A stretch of 64,000 nucleotides of DNA from Basidiobolus meristosporus CBS 931.73 (lineage: Eukaryota; Fungi; Basidiobolomycota), in the NCBI GenBank assembly GCA_002104905.1, contig MCFE01000198.1:1-64000 (forward strand), given 5' to 3'. Both the position numbers and the translations under genes were made by a program. Numbering within the stretch: the first letter of the stretch is position 1; every line of letters begins with the position of its first letter. The notes below the pieces were generated by a model. The model had not been told where the DNA came from and did not search any database. It saw nothing but the letters and a program-made list of their open reading frames with translations. Below, piece after piece: positions 1-36,361 of the stretch.

Positions 1-207
1 TAGAATATTCTCACCAAAATACCAGGTACCCAGAACATGAAAATTTGATAAGTTGTCCAAACAGACCCAAACTTTGCACACATGTTCTTGGGACCTTCCT
101 TAACTTATTCTACATGCTTGTAATGCCAAGACCGGGTAAAAGTATAAATACTACTTTTACATTCAATAAATCATTAAGTGAAAACCACAAAATCAACTGG
201 TTCTCCC
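1..207 (+). repeat. Truncated LTR copy of the same copia family (lacks the last 34 bp; 5' part lies outside the window)
   Basis: 1-207 aligns colinearly with 316-522 of the LTR at 208-556 and stops at TTCTCCC, directly abutting that LTR's TGTTG start. Confidence 0.9.
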
Positions 208-556
208 TGTTGTAAAAATTTGTATTTCCACCTAAATATTCACCTAACTTAGCCACTTAGCTCATTACCTTCAAATCCTAGAGAATACTGACCAAATTCC
301 TTGTTGGGATTTACCTAGAATATTTTCACCAAAATACCAGGTACCCAGAACATGAAAATTCTCAAAGCTGTCCAAACAGCCCCAAACTTTGCACACATGC
401 TCTTGGGACCTTCCTTAACCTATTCTATGTGTTTGTAATGCCAAGACCAGGTAAAAGTATAAATACTACTTTTACACTCAATAAATCATTAAGTGAAAAC
501 CACATTATCTACTTGTTCTCCCAATCACTTCCAATATCTCCAAGACTCTTACACCA
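208..556 (+). repeat. 5' LTR (349 bp)
   Basis: Begins TGTTGTAAAAA and ends TTACACCA, immediately followed by the PBS; direct repeat of 4543-4873. Confidence 0.93.
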
Positions 557-568
557 GGTTATGAGCCC
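557..568 (+). promoter_or_regulatory. Primer-binding site complementary to the anticodon stem-loop of initiator tRNA-Met (half-tRNA priming)
   Basis: GGTTATGAGCCC directly after the LTR's terminal CA; reverse complement of GGGCUCAUAACC. Same PBS type as Ty5 and Drosophila copia. Confidence 0.85.
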
Positions 569-3500
569 CAAGCTGTCACTCTCTACAATGTCTACTACTG
601 CTATTACTGGAATTTTTCCCTCTGCTGAAAAGTTGGATGGATCTAACTACCAAGTGTGGAAGGTGAAGATGAAGATGCTGCTACAACAAGGAGGCCTTTG
701 GGATATTGTCATGGGAGAAGAATGCCCTCCTAAAAACGTGGGAGAGGAAGCCTTAAAGTACCAGAAGAATGAACAAAGTGCCTTTAACTGCATTTGCCTT
801 AATGTCAAGGACAAATTGCTAATTCAATGCTCAAGAGCAAAAACGGCAAAGAATGCCTGGAAAGCATTAGAAGACACCTACCAGTCATGTTCAGCTGCCA
901 AGAAGATGTATCTGAGACAAAAATTCTTTACTACAAAGATGCTGCCAGGAGAAGAAATGAAAAATCTAATTAACAGAATTACCCTGCTGGTAGATGAGAT
1001 GGAATCTGTGGGTGTACCAATTACTGATGAGGATGTGATAGTTACCATCCTGAATAGCCTGACAGACAAGTTTCAGGGCCTTGTATCAGCCCTAGAGTCC
1101 AGAACTGAAGATTTGACCTTAAATTACGTATATGGAAGGCTTCTGGATGAAGAATCAAGAAAAACAAGCACCAATAAGAAGGAAGAAGAAAATGCTTTAA
1201 TAAGCAATGATAACCAACAAAGGAGGTACCCAAGACCCTACAAAGGCAACAGCAACCTGTTTTGTAACTACTGCAAAAGGAAAGGACACACATCAGACCA
1301 GTGTCTCAAAAAGAAAGATAATCAGCAAAAGAAGCCTGAGTATGGAAATGCTGCAACAACTGAAGATAGACTATTCATATCTGCACTAAATATGACCACA
1401 AACAAGGATTCTCAGATGTGGTATATTGACTCTGGAGCTTCTCAACACTTTACACACCAAAAAGAACTGTTTACCCAATATCAAGAAATTCCAATTAAGA
1501 AGGTTTTCATGGGTGACAATAGAACACTTGATGCAGTGGGAGAAGACATTATCCAAGTAGACCTAAGAAGCAGTGAAGGAAGCCATACACTGACCTTTAA
1601 AGAAGTACTCTATGTACCAGAAATAGCCAAGAACCTACTCTCTGTAAGCAAGGCCACAGCAGAAGGACTCAGTTTCAGTTTTGACAATTCTGGATGCAGG
1701 ATCACTGATCAAAATGGTGCCCATATTGCTTTGGGCATCAGAGATCAGAATCTATACAAGTTGACCTACATTCCATCATATTTGGAGGCCAATATAAGTA
1801 ACTTAAATGAAGAAACACCAATGCTTTGGCACTGGAGAGTTGGACACATCAATTTTGATTTTTGCGTAAAATGATCAAAGATCAGCTAATTTCTGGAGTG
1901 AAAATTGATCCCCCAGCTAATTTGGAGCACTGTGAAGCCTGCATATATGGGAAACAAGCCAGACAGCCGTTCAAGAGCTCTGGGTTAATCAAAACTAAGA
2001 AAAAATTAGATCTAATTCACTTAGATCTGTGTGGACCTATGCAAAATTTATCCTTGGGCAGGATGAAGTATTTAATCACTTTTATTGATGATTATACAAG
2101 ATACACATGGGTCTACTTCATGGAGAGAAAGGAAGAGCTCTGTCTAAGTTCAGGGAGTTTAAAGCCATGGTGGAGAGAGAAACTGGTGAAAAAATCAAGA
2201 AAATACACTCTGACAATGGTGGAGAATATACCTCAAAACTCTTCATCCACTTGTGCAAAATTCATGGGATAAAGCAAGAAACTACTGTACCATACTCCCC
2301 ACAGCAAAATGGAGTAGCAGAACAAGCTAACAGATCAATAATTGATATGGCAAGATCTATGATCCATGATCAAAAATTATCCTATGATTTTTGGGCAGAA
2401 TCAGTTGCCACTGCTGTATATCTTAAAAATAGGAGTTATAACCAAATACTTTGTGATTCTACTCCATTTGAAGCATGTTATGGATACAGACCAAGTGCAG
2501 AACATCTAAGAATATTTGGGTGTACAGCATATGCCAAAAAACTGGCTGGAAATCAGTCAAAATTTGAGCCAAAAAGTGTAAAATGCATATTTTTAGGCTA
2601 CTGCAATGAGAGTAAGGCATACAGACTCTAAAATACCAAAGCAAAGAAGCTTATCAAGTCCAGGGATGTGTTGTTTGATGAAAATTCAAAATTTTCCCAA
2701 AAAATGACATCAGATGATGACAAAAATTTGATCTCAGGTCCACCAATTGTCAGGATTGAATCAGAGCAAAACAATGAAAATTTTTTCACTCCAGAGGACT
2801 CTACAGCCGTGGTTCAGCCAGAACCAGTGCCCAGGAATATCCCAGAAGTGATCATTCCAGTATCAAATGCCCGGAGATCTAATTGGACAAGAAACAGTCC
2901 AAATTACTATATCAATGAGGGTACAAACTTAGCCTATGCCTATTCAGTCCATGTTGATGAACCCCAGACTGTAAAAGAGGCCCTAAGTAGCCCTCAGACA
3001 AAGTTTTGGAGATCTGCAATGACTGAGGAATATCAGGCCCTGATGGGAAATCAAACTTGGGACTTAGTCAAATTACCAATCAACCAAAAATCAATTGGAT
3101 GCAGATGGGTCTTCAAGACAAAATACAAAGCTGATGGTACAATTGAAGGATACAAAGCAAGACTTGTAGCCAAAGGATACTCTCAAACAAAAGGACTTGA
3201 CTATACTGAGACCTTTGCACCGGTAGCCAAGTTTAATTCCATCAGATTAATATTGGCTATTGCAGCCAAATATAAGTTTTTTATTCATCAAATGGATGTA
3301 AAAACTGCATTTTTGAATGGAGAACTTGATGAGGATGTGTATATGGACCAGCCTGATGGGTTTGCTGACCAAGATAACCCCCATTTGGTCTGCAAGCTTA
3401 AAAAGTCAATATATGGTCTCAAACAATCACCAAGAGCCTGTAATTGCAAGATAGATTCTTATTTGGAATCCTTGAGTTTCAAAAGAAGTAATGCTGACTA

Positions 3501-4531
3501 TAGTATATACTATAAGCCAGATAGAGCAAATCCAGTTCTACTAGCTCTATATGTGGATGATCTTATTATAGCCTCCAATAACCTAGAAACATTGGAAGAA
3601 ACTAAGTCCAGCCTATCTAAGGAGTTCAAGATGTCTGATTTAGGAGAACTTAGTTACTACTTAGGGATTAAGTTCCCCATAGACAGAAGTACCCAGACTA
3701 TCACCCTAAGTCAATCCAAGTATATTCAAGATATACTAAAGAAGTACAAAATGGCAGACTGTAAACCGGCAGCTACCCCAATGGAGACAAACCTTAACTT
3801 GGTCAAAACTCAACCAAATCAAGAGAGCTTGGTGCCATCTGAAAGCCCTGACTTTCCTTATCAATCTATGGTCGGCAGTCTGATGTATATCATGCTTGGA
3901 ACATGTCCAGATATCTCATATTCAGTGGGAGTTGTCAGCCAACATAATCACAACTATGGATCTGATCATATTGCAGCAGTTAAGCGGATTTTTAGATACC
4001 TAAAAGGAACTGCTGATATCTTCTTAAGATACACTTATAAGGATTCAGAACAGGATCTTGTGGGATACTCTGATGCTGATTGGGGACAAAATTTGGATGA
4101 CAGAAGATCTACCACAGGATACCCCTTTCTTTACTGTAAAGGAGCAATTTCATGGAATTCAAGAAAGCAACCAACCATAGCACTTTCTACCACAGAGGCA
4201 GAGTATATGGCAGCCTGTGAAGCTACAAAAGAAGCAATGTGGCTAAGAAAGCTTTTTACAGACTTAGGCCTACGTCAAAAAAACACCTATTACTTTATCT
4301 CAAGATAATCAAGGATGTATACAATTAGGTAGAAATCCAACTTTTTATGCTAGAGCCAAGCACATAGATATTAGACATCATTTCATACAAGAAGCTATAG
4401 AGAATAACTTAGTTAGCTTAGTTTACTGTCCTACAGATGAAATGATTACAGACATATATACCAAACCATTAGCTAGAGACAAGTTTGAATATCTTAGGTC
4501 AAAATTAGGACTAGTCAGTATGAGCATTTAG
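561..4531 (+). pseudogene. Disrupted gag-pol polyprotein
   Basis: Gag motif KLDGSNYQVW, CCHC knuckle CNYCKRKGHTSDQC, protease IDSGAS, integrase HHCC and D..D..E (LDLCGP, DNGGEY, NGVAE), RT LYVDD, RNase H YSDADW/EAEY. Frameshifts near 1860, 2135 and 4280 and an in-frame TAA at 2629-2631; final TAG at 4529-4531. Confidence 0.92.
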
Positions 4532-4533
4532 CT

Positions 4534-4542
4534 GAGTGGGAG
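4534..4542 (+). promoter_or_regulatory. Polypurine tract
   Basis: GAGTGGGAG immediately before the 3' LTR. Confidence 0.75.
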
Positions 4543-4873
4543 TGTTGTAAAAATTTGTAATTCCACCTAAATATTCACATAACTTAGTCACTTAGATCAT
4601 CACCTTCAAATCCTAGAGAATACTGACCAAATTCCTTGTCAGGATTTACTTAGAATATTTACCCAGAACATGAAAATTCTCAAAGTTGTCCAAACAGCCC
4701 CAAACTTTGCACACATATTCTTGGAACCTTCCTTAACCTATTCTACGTATTTGAATGCCAAGATCATGTAAAAGTATAAATATTACTTTTACATTCAATA
4801 AATCATTAAGTGAAAACCACATAATCTACTTGTTCTCCCAATCACTGCCAATATCTCCAAGACTCTTACAACA
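4543..4873 (+). repeat. 3' LTR (331 bp)
   Basis: TGTTGTAAAAA...TTACAACA. Versus the 5' LTR: a 17-bp and a 1-bp deletion and about 21 substitutions (hand alignment). Confidence 0.93.
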
Positions 4874-5301
4874 GAAGCATCAAGATTCTATCTCAGAGCT
4901 CTCAGCAGGGGTTGCTGGGTATCATGCATTCTTATGACAAAGCTATATTTCCTTGAATACTCTGATTCTCCAAAATAGTATTTACACAAGATTTCTAAGT
5001 TGTGAAAGAGCAACTTTTGCTATGCATCCAACATGTTTTGTCTAGTCTGGTCAAAACTACACCACCTCCTCTGGTCAATTATGACATTGAGTTTCAGATT
5101 CATCTATTATTCCAAGCTCTGTAAGCATTGGAATTATGAAGTGATCACAAATGTAGCATCCTTCATTAGTTGAACCTCCCAATCATAATTAGGCATTTAT
5201 TAACAATGATGCAGAGAAGATATACTGAAAAACCAGTAAAGCACCCAATTTGCCAAATATCTTCATTTGTATGCCCGGACTTGACTGCCTGATAATCATG
5301 C

Positions 5302-5317
5302 ATATATATATATATAT
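5302..5317. repeat. (AT)8 microsatellite within a 20-bp perfect palindrome (5300-5319)
   Basis: GC(AT)8GC read directly. Confidence 0.9.
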
Positions 5318-5575
5318 GCGCAGTTTCAAGATGCCAATTGCCTGTAAGCTACTCTAGCATCATTAAATCATGGTACTCAACACAATTAGTCAGTGTGGCT
5401 GATGTGATTTTGGGGTTTGGGTTTGCTGCACTAAATTTATGTAACTAGACTGACATAACTCCGATATATTATATCCGTATCATTAGTGCCCCTCGCCAAG
5501 CCTACTTCCCAACATCAATGCACTTGTGACTTACCCAGCTCTGAATTGCAGTGACCTCTACTAAATCTAACGTTA

Positions 5576-6629
5576 ATGGCTAGTAAAGCAGCTTCCAAGA
5601 GATTGGCCAAGGAATATATGGCTATTCAAAAGAGCCCTATACCTTTCATCACTACGAAACCATTGGAGGACAATGTGTTAGAATGGTAAATCGAAGTGTT
5701 CTTGTTTCGGTTCTCAGCAACTCACCCTTATCTTCCAAAAGGCATTACGTACTAACCGGGCCCCCCGATACTCCGTATTATGGTATGTACCACTGTCATC
5801 GTGACTGTCTTTTACTCGATTCTCACCTCGTAGCTCCTGGCAGGTGGGCAATATCACGGTAAGAACCTCAGCGCGTTTATTTCCTCGTACAAAGAATTTA
5901 CATAGAAAGAAAGGTAGAGTGATTTTTCCGAGTGAGTACCCTTTCAAGCCACCTTCCATACGCATGATCACTCCTAGTGGGCGCTTCAGTCCAAATGCTC
6001 GCATTTGCCTTAGTATGAGCGAGTTCCATCGTAAGTTACTGACATTAGCACTCAGCCCTCAACCAGACTTGTAAATACTTTTGCTCTAGCCAATACTTGG
6101 AATCCAGCTTGGTCTGTTTCGACAATACTCAACGGACTCTTATCTTTTATGGTATAACCAGTACATACGGTGCTTTTATGAAGCTTGACTAAAGTTCAGC
6201 CCCACAGGTTGGTGACGAAGAAACCACCGGTAGTATCCGTACAACCGATGCTGTGAAAAGGGCCTTTGCCTCAAAGTCGCATACCTATAATTATAACAGT
6301 TCAAAATTTAGAGGCAAGTGCGTACTCTGTATGGAATAGTTGCAGACTTGTTACTAATACTCGATATAGAAGTGTTTCCTGAACTCTGCTCGCTTTCGCC
6401 AAACCCAAGCTGTGGGGAGAGGTCAGACGAAAAAACCAGCCAACTAAAAGGTGCGCACAATGCGAATGCCAATCAAAACCAGGTACTTGTTGGGACTTCA
6501 TGGACGAGATCAATTGTATTGTTGTTGGTACGTGTTTTGTTGGAACGACTCCTACGTGATAACAATTGCTGACCAGTCATGCAGATGTGCATTATTGTGG
6601 TAGTGCTCCTATTACTTCAAGCCTACTGA
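5576..6629 (+). CDS. UBC6: ER-anchored ubiquitin-conjugating enzyme E2 (Ubc6/UBE2J2), multi-exon
   Basis: Spliced [93 protein letters not shown] plus hydrophobic C-terminal tail; 3' end approximate. Confidence 0.92.
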
Positions 6630-34492: not shown

Positions 34493-34993
34493 CTAATAAG
34501 CCTTAAGTCCCTTCTTCATATAGCCGACTTTTTTCTTCTCAACTTTGGATTGGCCCGCTTTGTAGCCACGCCAGTACCCACGATCCATACCAACATCGTG
34601 ACCATCTTTCCAGCCGGAGCCCTCACCTTCTTTGAAGCCAACCTGGGTACCCTTCTTGTACCCCTTCTTGTAGCCAGCATCCTTCCCGGAGTCATACCCT
34701 TCCTCATATCCCCATTTCTGGCCTTCTTCCCAGCCCTTGTCATTGCCCTTTTCGTGCCCATTCCAATATCCATCATCCATTCCGCTCTCAAAGCCCTCGG
34801 AATAACCTTCTTTGGCACCATCGCGATAGCCACGGTCGTAGTCATCAGGCTCAGTGGACTTCTTGTAATTACCGCCATCGCCATCACGGTCACCATAACC
34901 CTTCACGCCACCAGCTCCTTTCTCAGGGAAAGGGTTGGCGAGTATGGCCCCAGCCAGACTGAGGGTGATCAATGATAAGCCAAGGAATTTCAT
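34493..34993 (-). CDS. Secreted Gly/Tyr-rich protein with 24 tandem xxxG repeats (166 aa, orphan)
   Basis: Signal peptide MKFLGLSLITLSLAGAILA|NP, strict 4-residue Gly periodicity, intronless; TATATA about 65 bp upstream. Confidence 0.82.
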   Translation of the reverse strand: MKFLGLSLITLSLAGAILANPFPEKGAGGVKGYGDRDGDGGNYKKSTEPDDYDRGYRDGAKEGYSEGFESGMDDGYWNGHEKGNDKGWEEGQKWGYEEGYDSGKDAGYKKGYKKGTQVGFKEGEGSGWKDGHDVGMDRGYWRGYKAGQSKVEKKKVGYMKKGLKAY

Positions 34994-35620: not shown

Positions 35621-36361
35621 ATGAAACTTTCCAAACTCTTCTCTTATTTCAAATCAAGTTCCCAGGATAAACACAGGGTGAAGACCTCCACCCCAACACA
35701 AGGTGCATCCCCCTTGAGTGACCAGCGAGGCGCATCCGAAGATGCCTCCGGTGCTCAATTCAACATCACCTCCTACCGCATGCATGTGCTTGAAGCAGAG
35801 AATCAGTATCTGTACGAGCAGAACCGCAAGCTCAACAGGGAGCTGAAAAACGCTCGCATCACCAATGACTCCCTCAGGGAGATCGTCAAAATGAAGGACC
35901 GCTTGATCGACTCTATCGTCGAAGAGCAGTACGAAACAATGCAGAAGGCGCATATCATCGAGGATAGCATGAGATTGTTGTTGCTAGACGGAGACAAGCC
36001 AACCCATGCCTCCAAGGATTCGAAGGCTTCCTACAAACACGGGGATCCTGAGGCACTGAAGCAATTCGTGGCCGCCATCAAATCCATCCCATCAACACCG
36101 CAACAGGTCAAGGTCACCCAAGCCAACATCCCCATGCCCAAGTGCTCCCCTACTCACAAGCAGAAGTACACCAAACCATTGCTTCCCCCACTCCCGGCCA
36201 TCTCGGACGCCGACGAGTCCTTCGGGCTTTCCATCAAGAATGAGATGAACATGCACCAGAAGGAGCCCTACCTGAGCTTGCTCGCGGTTCCCAAGAATTG
36301 CGGCCGATCAGAATCCGCGGAGTTTGGGAAGCAGCTACGCCTAATGGCATCGGATTTCTGA
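35621..36361 (+). CDS. Hypothetical coiled-coil protein (246 aa, orphan)
   Basis: Intronless ORF with G/C-ending codon bias, heptad region HVLEAENQYLYEQNRKLNRELKNARITNDSLREIV, Pro-rich KPLLPPLP; no family recognised. Confidence 0.72.
   Translation: MKLSKLFSYFKSSSQDKHRVKTSTPTQGASPLSDQRGASEDASGAQFNITSYRMHVLEAENQYLYEQNRKLNRELKNARITNDSLREIVKMKDRLIDSIVEEQYETMQKAHIIEDSMRLLLLDGDKPTHASKDSKASYKHGDPEALKQFVAAIKSIPSTPQQVKVTQANIPMPKCSPTHKQKYTKPLLPPLPAISDADESFGLSIKNEMNMHQKEPYLSLLAVPKNCGRSESAEFGKQLRLMASDF

Follow-up and report, generated by a model that had tools for sequence, protein, structure and literature searches.

The intronless tetrad gene of Basidiobolus meristosporus, a frog-gut fungus, encodes a protein with a known motif, the GX3 repeat, in a new setting, and does not constitute a family-less novelty. 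Behind a signal-peptide-like start, Gly occupies every fourth position through 24 consecutive tetrads. Tentatively, and with confidence a little short of even, the product is interpreted as a secreted, self-associating rod of helices that meet through a glycine interface, serving as a wall, matrix or adhesive component. This reading is built on the gene model, the motif, its conservation at the protein level and the predicted helix, from which we infer secretion, oligomerisation, polarity of assembly and biological role.

Gene model and genomic context

The analysed window is a stretch of 64,000 nucleotides (positions 1 to 64,000, forward strand) from strain CBS 931.73. The following features were assigned to the tetrad gene and its products (the basis is given in brackets).

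34493..34993, minus strand: coding sequence, intronless, 166 codons and a TAG stop (translation; single-exon gene for 166 residues in GCA_002104905.1, contig MCFE01000198.1)
34994..35620, no strand: presumed promoter, the 5' intergenic region shared with a divergent gene for 246 residues (gene table; promoter role presumed)
34937..34993, minus strand: signal-peptide-like N-terminus, residues 1-19 (read from the sequence; secretion presumed)
34841..34936, minus strand: Gly/Asp/Lys-rich flexible linker, residues 20-51, ending in the acidic helix start DDYD (AlphaFold2, charge)
34553..34840, minus strand: 24 uninterrupted (aromatic-polar-polar-Gly) tetrads, residues 52-147 (sequence; Pfam Yae1_N match; AlphaFold2 helix)
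34496..34552, minus strand: Lys-rich tail, residues 148-166, net charge +6 (sequence, AlphaFold2, charge)

The tetrad gene is a real gene. The intronless gene at 34493-34993 proposed in the preliminary description translates into 166 residues followed by TAG and coincides with a single-exon GenBank call, and its start ATG has an A at position -3. On the 5' side, an uncharacterised gene for 246 residues lies head to head at a distance of 627 bp; on the 3' side, a UPF0220 gene lies tail to tail, 198 bp away. The wider neighbourhood consists of housekeeping genes (Pex14, Arf, SIN1, spermine synthase, and Gar1). The divergent gene (35621-36361, plus strand) is also intronless, and its Ser/Lys/Gln-rich product has no Pfam match on record. 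Two further open reading frames overlap the tetrad gene (34550-34975 on the plus strand and 34516-34896 on the minus strand in another frame). They would encode 141 and 126 residues, one of the products being very hydrophobic; they are unlikely genes and were set aside as by-products of the periodic, biased coding sequence.

Elsewhere in the window, positions 1-6000 have a GC content of 38-39%, as opposed to 41-53% in the rest, and contain two long open reading frames (429-1874 and 2668-4308); the first 4 kb show a strong positive AT skew (0.15-0.17).

Protein architecture and repeat statistics

The N-terminus comprises MK, about 16 hydrophobic residues, A-G-A/I-L-A and then N-P. A heuristic reading of this segment agrees with the signal peptide proposed earlier, with cleavage probably following A16 (A-G-A) or A19 (I-L-A). 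The linker (residues 20-51) has a net charge of -2. The run of 24 consecutive xxxG units had been placed correctly at residues 52-147 (34553-34840), in coordinates as well as in counts. Position x1, directly after the glycine, is dominated by large side chains (Y10 F2 W2 H2 M2, i.e., 42% Tyr and 33% F/W/H/M), and the count of Tyr, Trp, Phe or His in 16 of the 24 units agrees with the aromatic stripe described before. Between 60 and 80% of the residues at x2 and x3 are charged, Lys and Arg being frequent. In the tail (residues 148-166), the predicted helix goes on, while the Gly register is broken (V, K, M, and L occupy the register positions).

When the mature sequence was shuffled 100,000 times, Gly runs with a period of four reached at most nine units, compared with 24 observed. 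All four Gly codons are used for the register glycines (GGC 10, GGT 6, GGG 5, and GGA 3), and the sole find of Tandem Repeats Finder in the gene was a 12-nt unit repeated 1.9 times. The period is therefore kept at the protein level and does not reflect a young DNA repeat, which indicates selection on the protein.

The mature protein has a mass of about 16.3 kDa, a pI of 6.95 and a GRAVY of -1.6, and its composition is rich in Gly (24%), Lys (16%), Tyr (9.5%), and Trp (3%). As had been noted, Cys is absent, and the charge shifts from acidic to basic along the chain (net charge -10 in residues 20-103 and +10 in residues 104-166). Opposite-charge pairs at i/i+3,4 within the helix number 13, against 18.4 +/- 2.8 for permuted tetrad orders, so the charges are arranged in blocks. 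Three types of processing were considered and rejected: a GPI anchor (there is no C-terminal hydrophobic segment), N-glycosylation (the N-x-S/T sequon is absent from the 166-residue protein), and Kex2-type propeptide processing (the single KK, at residues 44-45, is not conserved in the paralogue described below).

Family matches and wider relatives

The protein matches the Pfam family PF09811 (Yae1_N) with 33.5 bits (E 3.4e-08), the gathering score being 27.5; the match is best over residues 95-123. Since the match lies above the gathering score, the earlier claim that the protein belongs to no described family fails at the motif level. Yae1_N was the only match in a Pfam scan of the 166-residue protein at E<=10, and the FliH domain (PF02108) was not found in it. 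Nevertheless, the suggested link of the GxxxG run to both FliH/YscL and Yae1/Lto1 was well founded, given the Yae1_N match and a repeat grammar shared with FliH.

The orphan status proposed for the protein is likewise not supported, in view of its numerous relatives. An exhaustive phmmer search (1.84 billion representatives) returned 1474 proteins at E<=1e-3, 101 of them at E<=1e-10. Most are unnamed metagenome proteins; where an origin could be assigned, it was bacterial or phage. Among the PHROGs, the motif occurs in families of unknown function, with phrog_4785 at E 3.8e-11. The exact 166-residue sequence was not found in a collection of 15 billion proteins. A word-index search with the protein alone gave 117 candidates, none of them significant, the tool being limited in length and words.

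The statistics on relatives refer to 279 retrieved proteins, and the scan for Pfam domains to 103 of the relatives. The runs reach 92 tetrads, and 85 of the 279 proteins have at least 24. Position x1 is Tyr in 48% and Phe in 9% of cases (57% together), whereas x2 and x3 are polar or acidic. By a crude hydropathy test, 155 of the 279 possess an N-terminal hydrophobic segment, and lipoboxes or membrane anchors are present in many. Yae1_N was matched in 101 of the 103 scanned proteins, accompanied in some by other domains: Phage_tail_C (5), LRR_5, PEP-CTERM, Lcl_C, CBM_5_12, CARDB, DUF285, and FliH (2). Genuine FliH proteins were also pulled in by a profile of the fungal proteins, a search that found no other named fungal proteins.

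Outside fungi, long exported segments of the (aromatic-x-x-G)n type are thus common. The motif belongs to exported and phage-tail proteins as well, because surface and phage domains co-occur with it, as do N-terminal hydrophobic segments; plausibly, it acts there as a stalk placed between an anchor and a globular domain. Literature on PF09811/Yae1_N outside Yae1 and on the Basidiobolus secretome was searched, and nothing relevant was found.

Four metagenomic, bacterial-looking proteins (P0034, P0051, P0146, and P0191) are membrane-anchored and share, after the (YxxG)n run, a C-terminal domain of about 120 residues that starts near N-P-T-Y and ends in I-x-W; it corresponds to no Pfam family in the 103-protein scan. 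Non-specific matches also occur in the phmmer list. An example is a 'hypothetical protein' of the salamander Pleurodeles waltl (P0021, KAJ1212968.1), retrieved solely via a low-complexity xxxG run of the TEPG/SPPG type.

Fungal counterparts and the question of descent

Similarity between proteins with the same strict repeat could reflect either common descent or the repeat grammar itself. In the shuffle control, residues at x1, x2, and x3 were permuted among the query's own tetrads and BLASTP was repeated, so that the grammar was preserved and the order lost. Scores of the real query against bacterial, phage, and Smittium proteins did not differ from those of the shuffled versions (z -0.2 to 1.5). 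The E-values to these proteins consequently measure repeat grammar and not descent.

A second protein of the same genome behaves differently. P0100 (ORY05313.1, K493DRAFT_296519, L002:5001-5675, contig MCFE01000026.1 of B. meristosporus CBS 931.73) scored 64.3 bits with the real query and 50.6 +/- 4.8 bits with the shuffles (z 2.8, a score reached by 1 of 100). On this modest evidence from sequence comparison, it is probably a true paralogue of the tetrad gene, which also speaks against an orphan. P0100 comprises 224 residues. Its N-terminus is hydrophobic, its helix likewise starts with DDYD-x-GY, up to 17 tetrads follow one another without a break, and the C-terminal part is rich in Asn, Ser, and Thr. 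The protein matches Yae1_N with 29.2 bits, and its UniRef name is Yae1 N-terminal domain-containing protein. Its gene lies on the same strand as its two neighbours, a chitin deacetylase gene (Chitin_bind_1 and Polysacc_deac_1, 215 bp upstream) and a gene for a 159-residue Chitin_bind_1 protein (L002:3817-8433). These chitin-related neighbours hint at a cell-wall context for the family.

The architecture of the tetrad protein recurs in a 399-residue protein from Smittium mucronatum (P0011, OLY81161.1, L004:3001-4200), in which a signal-like start is followed by a Gly-rich linker, a YD-x-GY start and 45 tetrads, and in which the C-terminal part contains Cys. Its Yae1_N score amounts to 64.7 bits. 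The protein is named 'Epsin-1' in GenBank and UniRef; this looks like a mis-annotation because Yae1_N is its sole match.

All three fungal tetrad genes examined are intronless. Horizontal transfer from bacteria or phages was weighed for this reason and because both fungi live in guts; given that the shuffle control contains no order-specific signal, neither transfer nor convergence can be supported. The search for paralogues and taxonomic range proposed in the preliminary description has accordingly yielded a probable paralogue and mostly bacterial or phage relatives, while on fungal versus bacterial origin the signal is confined to the level of grammar.

Comparison with known glycine-repeat systems

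The best-characterized GX3 proteins are Yae1 and Lto1 (YAE1D1/ORAOV1), which resemble the tetrad protein in their tandem G-x-x-x units, where Gly is followed by an aromatic residue, and in matching PF09811. In these proteins, the motif adopts a helical form and provides the glycine-faced interface between the two chains of a complex. Complex formation occurs via the GX3 motifs, and Gly-to-Ala mutants lose binding (PMC4523923); an AlphaFold3 model in which the S. pombe Yae1 domain is paired with Lto1 shows an intertwined coiled coil whose glycine interface is continuous (PMC12810181). Yae1 and Lto1 are cytosolic, have about 10 units and partner-specific ends (such as the C-terminal Trp of Lto1), and take part in Fe-S insertion into Rli1. 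The tetrad protein, in contrast, begins like a signal peptide, comprises 24 units without any other domain, and ends in K-A-Y. The conserved C-terminal Trp of Lto1 (Phe in some organisms) is needed to bind the CIA targeting complex (PMC4523923), and a further report describes CIA clients as being recognised by a C-terminal tripeptide, [LIM]-[DES]-[WF] (PMC10245660).

FliH/YscL proteins resemble the tetrad protein in that x1 is rich in Tyr/Phe, x2 and x3 are polar or charged, and a helix is predicted. In FliH, Tyr and Phe make up more than 45% of x1 (PMC2674601). FliH is cytoplasmic, and its m = 0-12 repeats are followed by the FliI-binding FliH domain (PF02108), which the tetrad protein lacks.

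Closest in design are the bacterial and phage (Y-x-x-G)n surface proteins (phrog_4785 and proteins with Phage_tail_C, LRR_5, Lcl_C, or PEP-CTERM), in which 20-92 tetrads follow the grammar of the tetrad protein, frequently preceded by a signal peptide, lipobox, or membrane anchor. Most of them are acidic, with D/E/S/T at x2 and x3, and the repeat forms a segment between the anchor and a globular domain. The tetrad protein differs in being rod-only, Lys/Arg-rich, and charged as a dipole, and the likeness is at the level of grammar alone. Extracytoplasmic (aromatic-x-x-G)n proteins were defined by an export signal or anchor together with at least eight tetrads of Tyr/Phe-dominated x1; with its signal-like start and 24 tetrads, the tetrad protein falls within this class.

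In transmembrane GxxxG (GASright) dimers, glycines at i and i+4 allow close backbone contact, and the helices cross in a right-handed manner at about 40 degrees. Such motifs comprise two or three units in hydrophobic membrane helices, whereas the tetrad protein contains 24 in a hydrophilic, soluble helix. The large share of charged residues at x2/x3 (60-80%) and the mature GRAVY of -1.6 set it apart from membrane-spanning GxxxG proteins.

Predicted structure

AlphaFold2 was run on the monomer with a 34-row alignment of short relatives. The best model contains a single continuous helix from residue 51 to 165 (pLDDT 80-88), preceded by a separate helix at residues 3-19 and by residues 20-50, which have no secondary structure (pLDDT 54-62). 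The monomer pTM is 0.33, and in the remaining four of the five models pLDDT averages 59-64. Of the helical bundle or amyloid-like polymer suggested in the preliminary description, it is the helix, and not the association, that this prediction supports; the fibre, amyloid, glue, and effector roles proposed there are speculative. For the identical sequence, the ESM Atlas model has a pLDDT of 0.55; the Atlas gave no usable feature match, and all its structure matches had TM <0.35. A single-sequence AlphaFold2 model of P0100 is helical and unreliable (pLDDT 41).

Foldseek found no match for the AlphaFold2 model in the PDB, as is expected for a lone helix. Searches of PDB sequences and with the 34-row profile retrieved low-complexity inserts alone (a Plasmodium-type pyridoxal kinase and OCM3). 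Within these sequence, profile, and Foldseek searches, there is no solved structure containing a long tetrad run.

Proposed mechanism

If the predicted helix is formed, the mature protein would comprise a flexible leader of 30 residues and one alpha-helix of about 115 residues. With Gly at every fourth residue over 96 residues, usually followed by Tyr, Phe, Trp, or His, the helix would expose a bare glycine groove lined by aromatic side chains. A period of four on an alpha-helix corresponds to a rotation of about 40 degrees per tetrad, and hence the Gly and aromatic stripes would wind right-handedly around the helix; according to helix arithmetic, the Gly stripe would complete one turn in about 36 residues (54 A).

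If Yae1-Lto1 and FliH are taken as a guide, two or more of these helices might associate through their glycine faces and wind into a right-handed, intertwined rod. According to our own calculation, helices about 6.5 A apart that follow the pitch of the stripe would cross at about 40 degrees, i.e., in GASright geometry. Because the searches of the PDB gave no solved structure with such a run, the geometry of the dimer is based on analogy and helix arithmetic. The charge dipole (-10/+10) could favour antiparallel or staggered self-assembly; alternatively, the Lys-rich tail might dock onto anionic wall polymers. The likely role would be that of a rod-like structural, spacer, or adhesive part of the cell wall or extracellular matrix. 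Several observations count against the rod: the pTM is low, as is the pLDDT of four AlphaFold2 models, of the ESM Atlas model and of the paralogue model; a Gly content of 24% combined with a GRAVY of -1.6 is also typical of disordered proteins; and the gene's own neighbours are housekeeping genes.

Alternative explanations

The composition could also be that of a matrix protein rich in Gly, Tyr, and Lys that is disordered and acts as an adhesive or forms coacervates. Such a protein would stick through Tyr and Lys, would possibly be cross-linked oxidatively, and would contain no helical zipper. Gly/Tyr/Lys-rich bioadhesives such as mussel foot proteins are small and secreted, with high contents of these three residues and no strict period-4 register. 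The mature tetrad protein, with its abundant Gly, Lys, Tyr, and Trp, its strong hydrophilicity and its lack of Cys, resembles marine adhesive proteins in composition; no sequence relationship to mussel foot proteins exists. Basidiobolus moreover forms adhesive capilliconidia, and the low confidence of four of the five AlphaFold2 models and of the ESM Atlas model would suit a disordered chain. However, a disordered glue needs no strict period of four with position-specific grammar over 24 units. This grammar is that of motifs acting as helical interaction modules, and the best AlphaFold2 model is a confident helix. A glue of this kind is therefore considered fairly unlikely.

An improbable function is that of a hydrophilin or LEA-like protectant, disordered in solution and helical on drying, which would guard spores or wall components. 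Very high hydrophilicity, the Gly content and a long predicted helix without a hydrophobic core are consistent with it. LEA repeats, on the other hand, are 11-mers without a Gly register; the sole family match is Yae1_N, and nothing links the gene to desiccation.

There is little probability, too, in an antimicrobial effector or secreted hetero-zipper that pairs with the corresponding motif in surface or tail proteins from gut bacteria or phages, or whose cationic end attacks membranes. The GX3 motif does mediate hetero-dimerisation in Yae1-Lto1, many bacterial and phage proteins that carry surface or tail domains display this grammar, and the fungi with secreted versions, Basidiobolus and Smittium, both live in guts; a direct action on membranes would draw on the Lys-rich C-terminus. 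The argument is nonetheless purely analogical, and the protein, which is highly hydrophilic and neutral in net charge, lacks an amphipathic segment of the membrane type.

An annotation artefact, in which an unexpressed or mis-called open reading frame arose in a compositionally biased stretch, has a similarly poor chance. It could account for the absence of the exact protein from the 15-billion-protein collection and for the two overlapping frames, but a 24-unit period at the protein level that uses four Gly codons cannot last without coding selection. The frame also has an ATG in a good context, a signal-peptide-like start, and a clean stop, it fits the intergenic gap, and the same genome encodes an annotated protein of the same architecture.

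That the protein is a divergent cytosolic adaptor of the Yae1/Lto1 type in iron-sulfur assembly, its N-terminus having been mis-read, is extremely improbable: the Yae1_N match and the UniRef name of the paralogue would agree with it, yet the N-terminus is hydrophobic and signal-like, 24 repeats replace about 10, the C-terminal K-A-Y is neither the Trp/Phe of Lto1 nor the CIA tripeptide, and the shuffle control leaves grammar-level similarity alone to other GX3 proteins.

Implications for the GX3 motif

According to Paul et al., the GX3 motif occurs in no other eukaryotic protein than Yae1 and Lto1 (PMC4523923), and Trost and Moore regarded long GX3 runs as 'very rare in nature' (PMC2674601). 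The fungal tetrad proteins form an exception to the former statement. Both descriptions ('unique to Yae1/Lto1' and 'very rare') are superseded by well over 1000 proteins with the same grammar, mostly bacterial or phage, a few of which seem to be secreted fungal proteins.

As a short, rod-only, Cys-free, and probably unglycosylated protein, the tetrad protein represents a convenient model for the folding and pairing of a soluble helix with Gly at every fourth position. A wider proposal extends the favoured rod reading to both fungi: Basidiobolus and Smittium, as early-diverging gut fungi, would secrete rod-only GX3 proteins that are joined by a continuous, right-handed, GASright-like glycine interface and build fibres or an adhesive, or that zip onto the corresponding motif on bacterial or phage surfaces. 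This proposal is decidedly unlikely as a whole; if true, such a soluble extracellular 'glycine super-zipper' would represent a novel class of interaction module in fibrous proteins.
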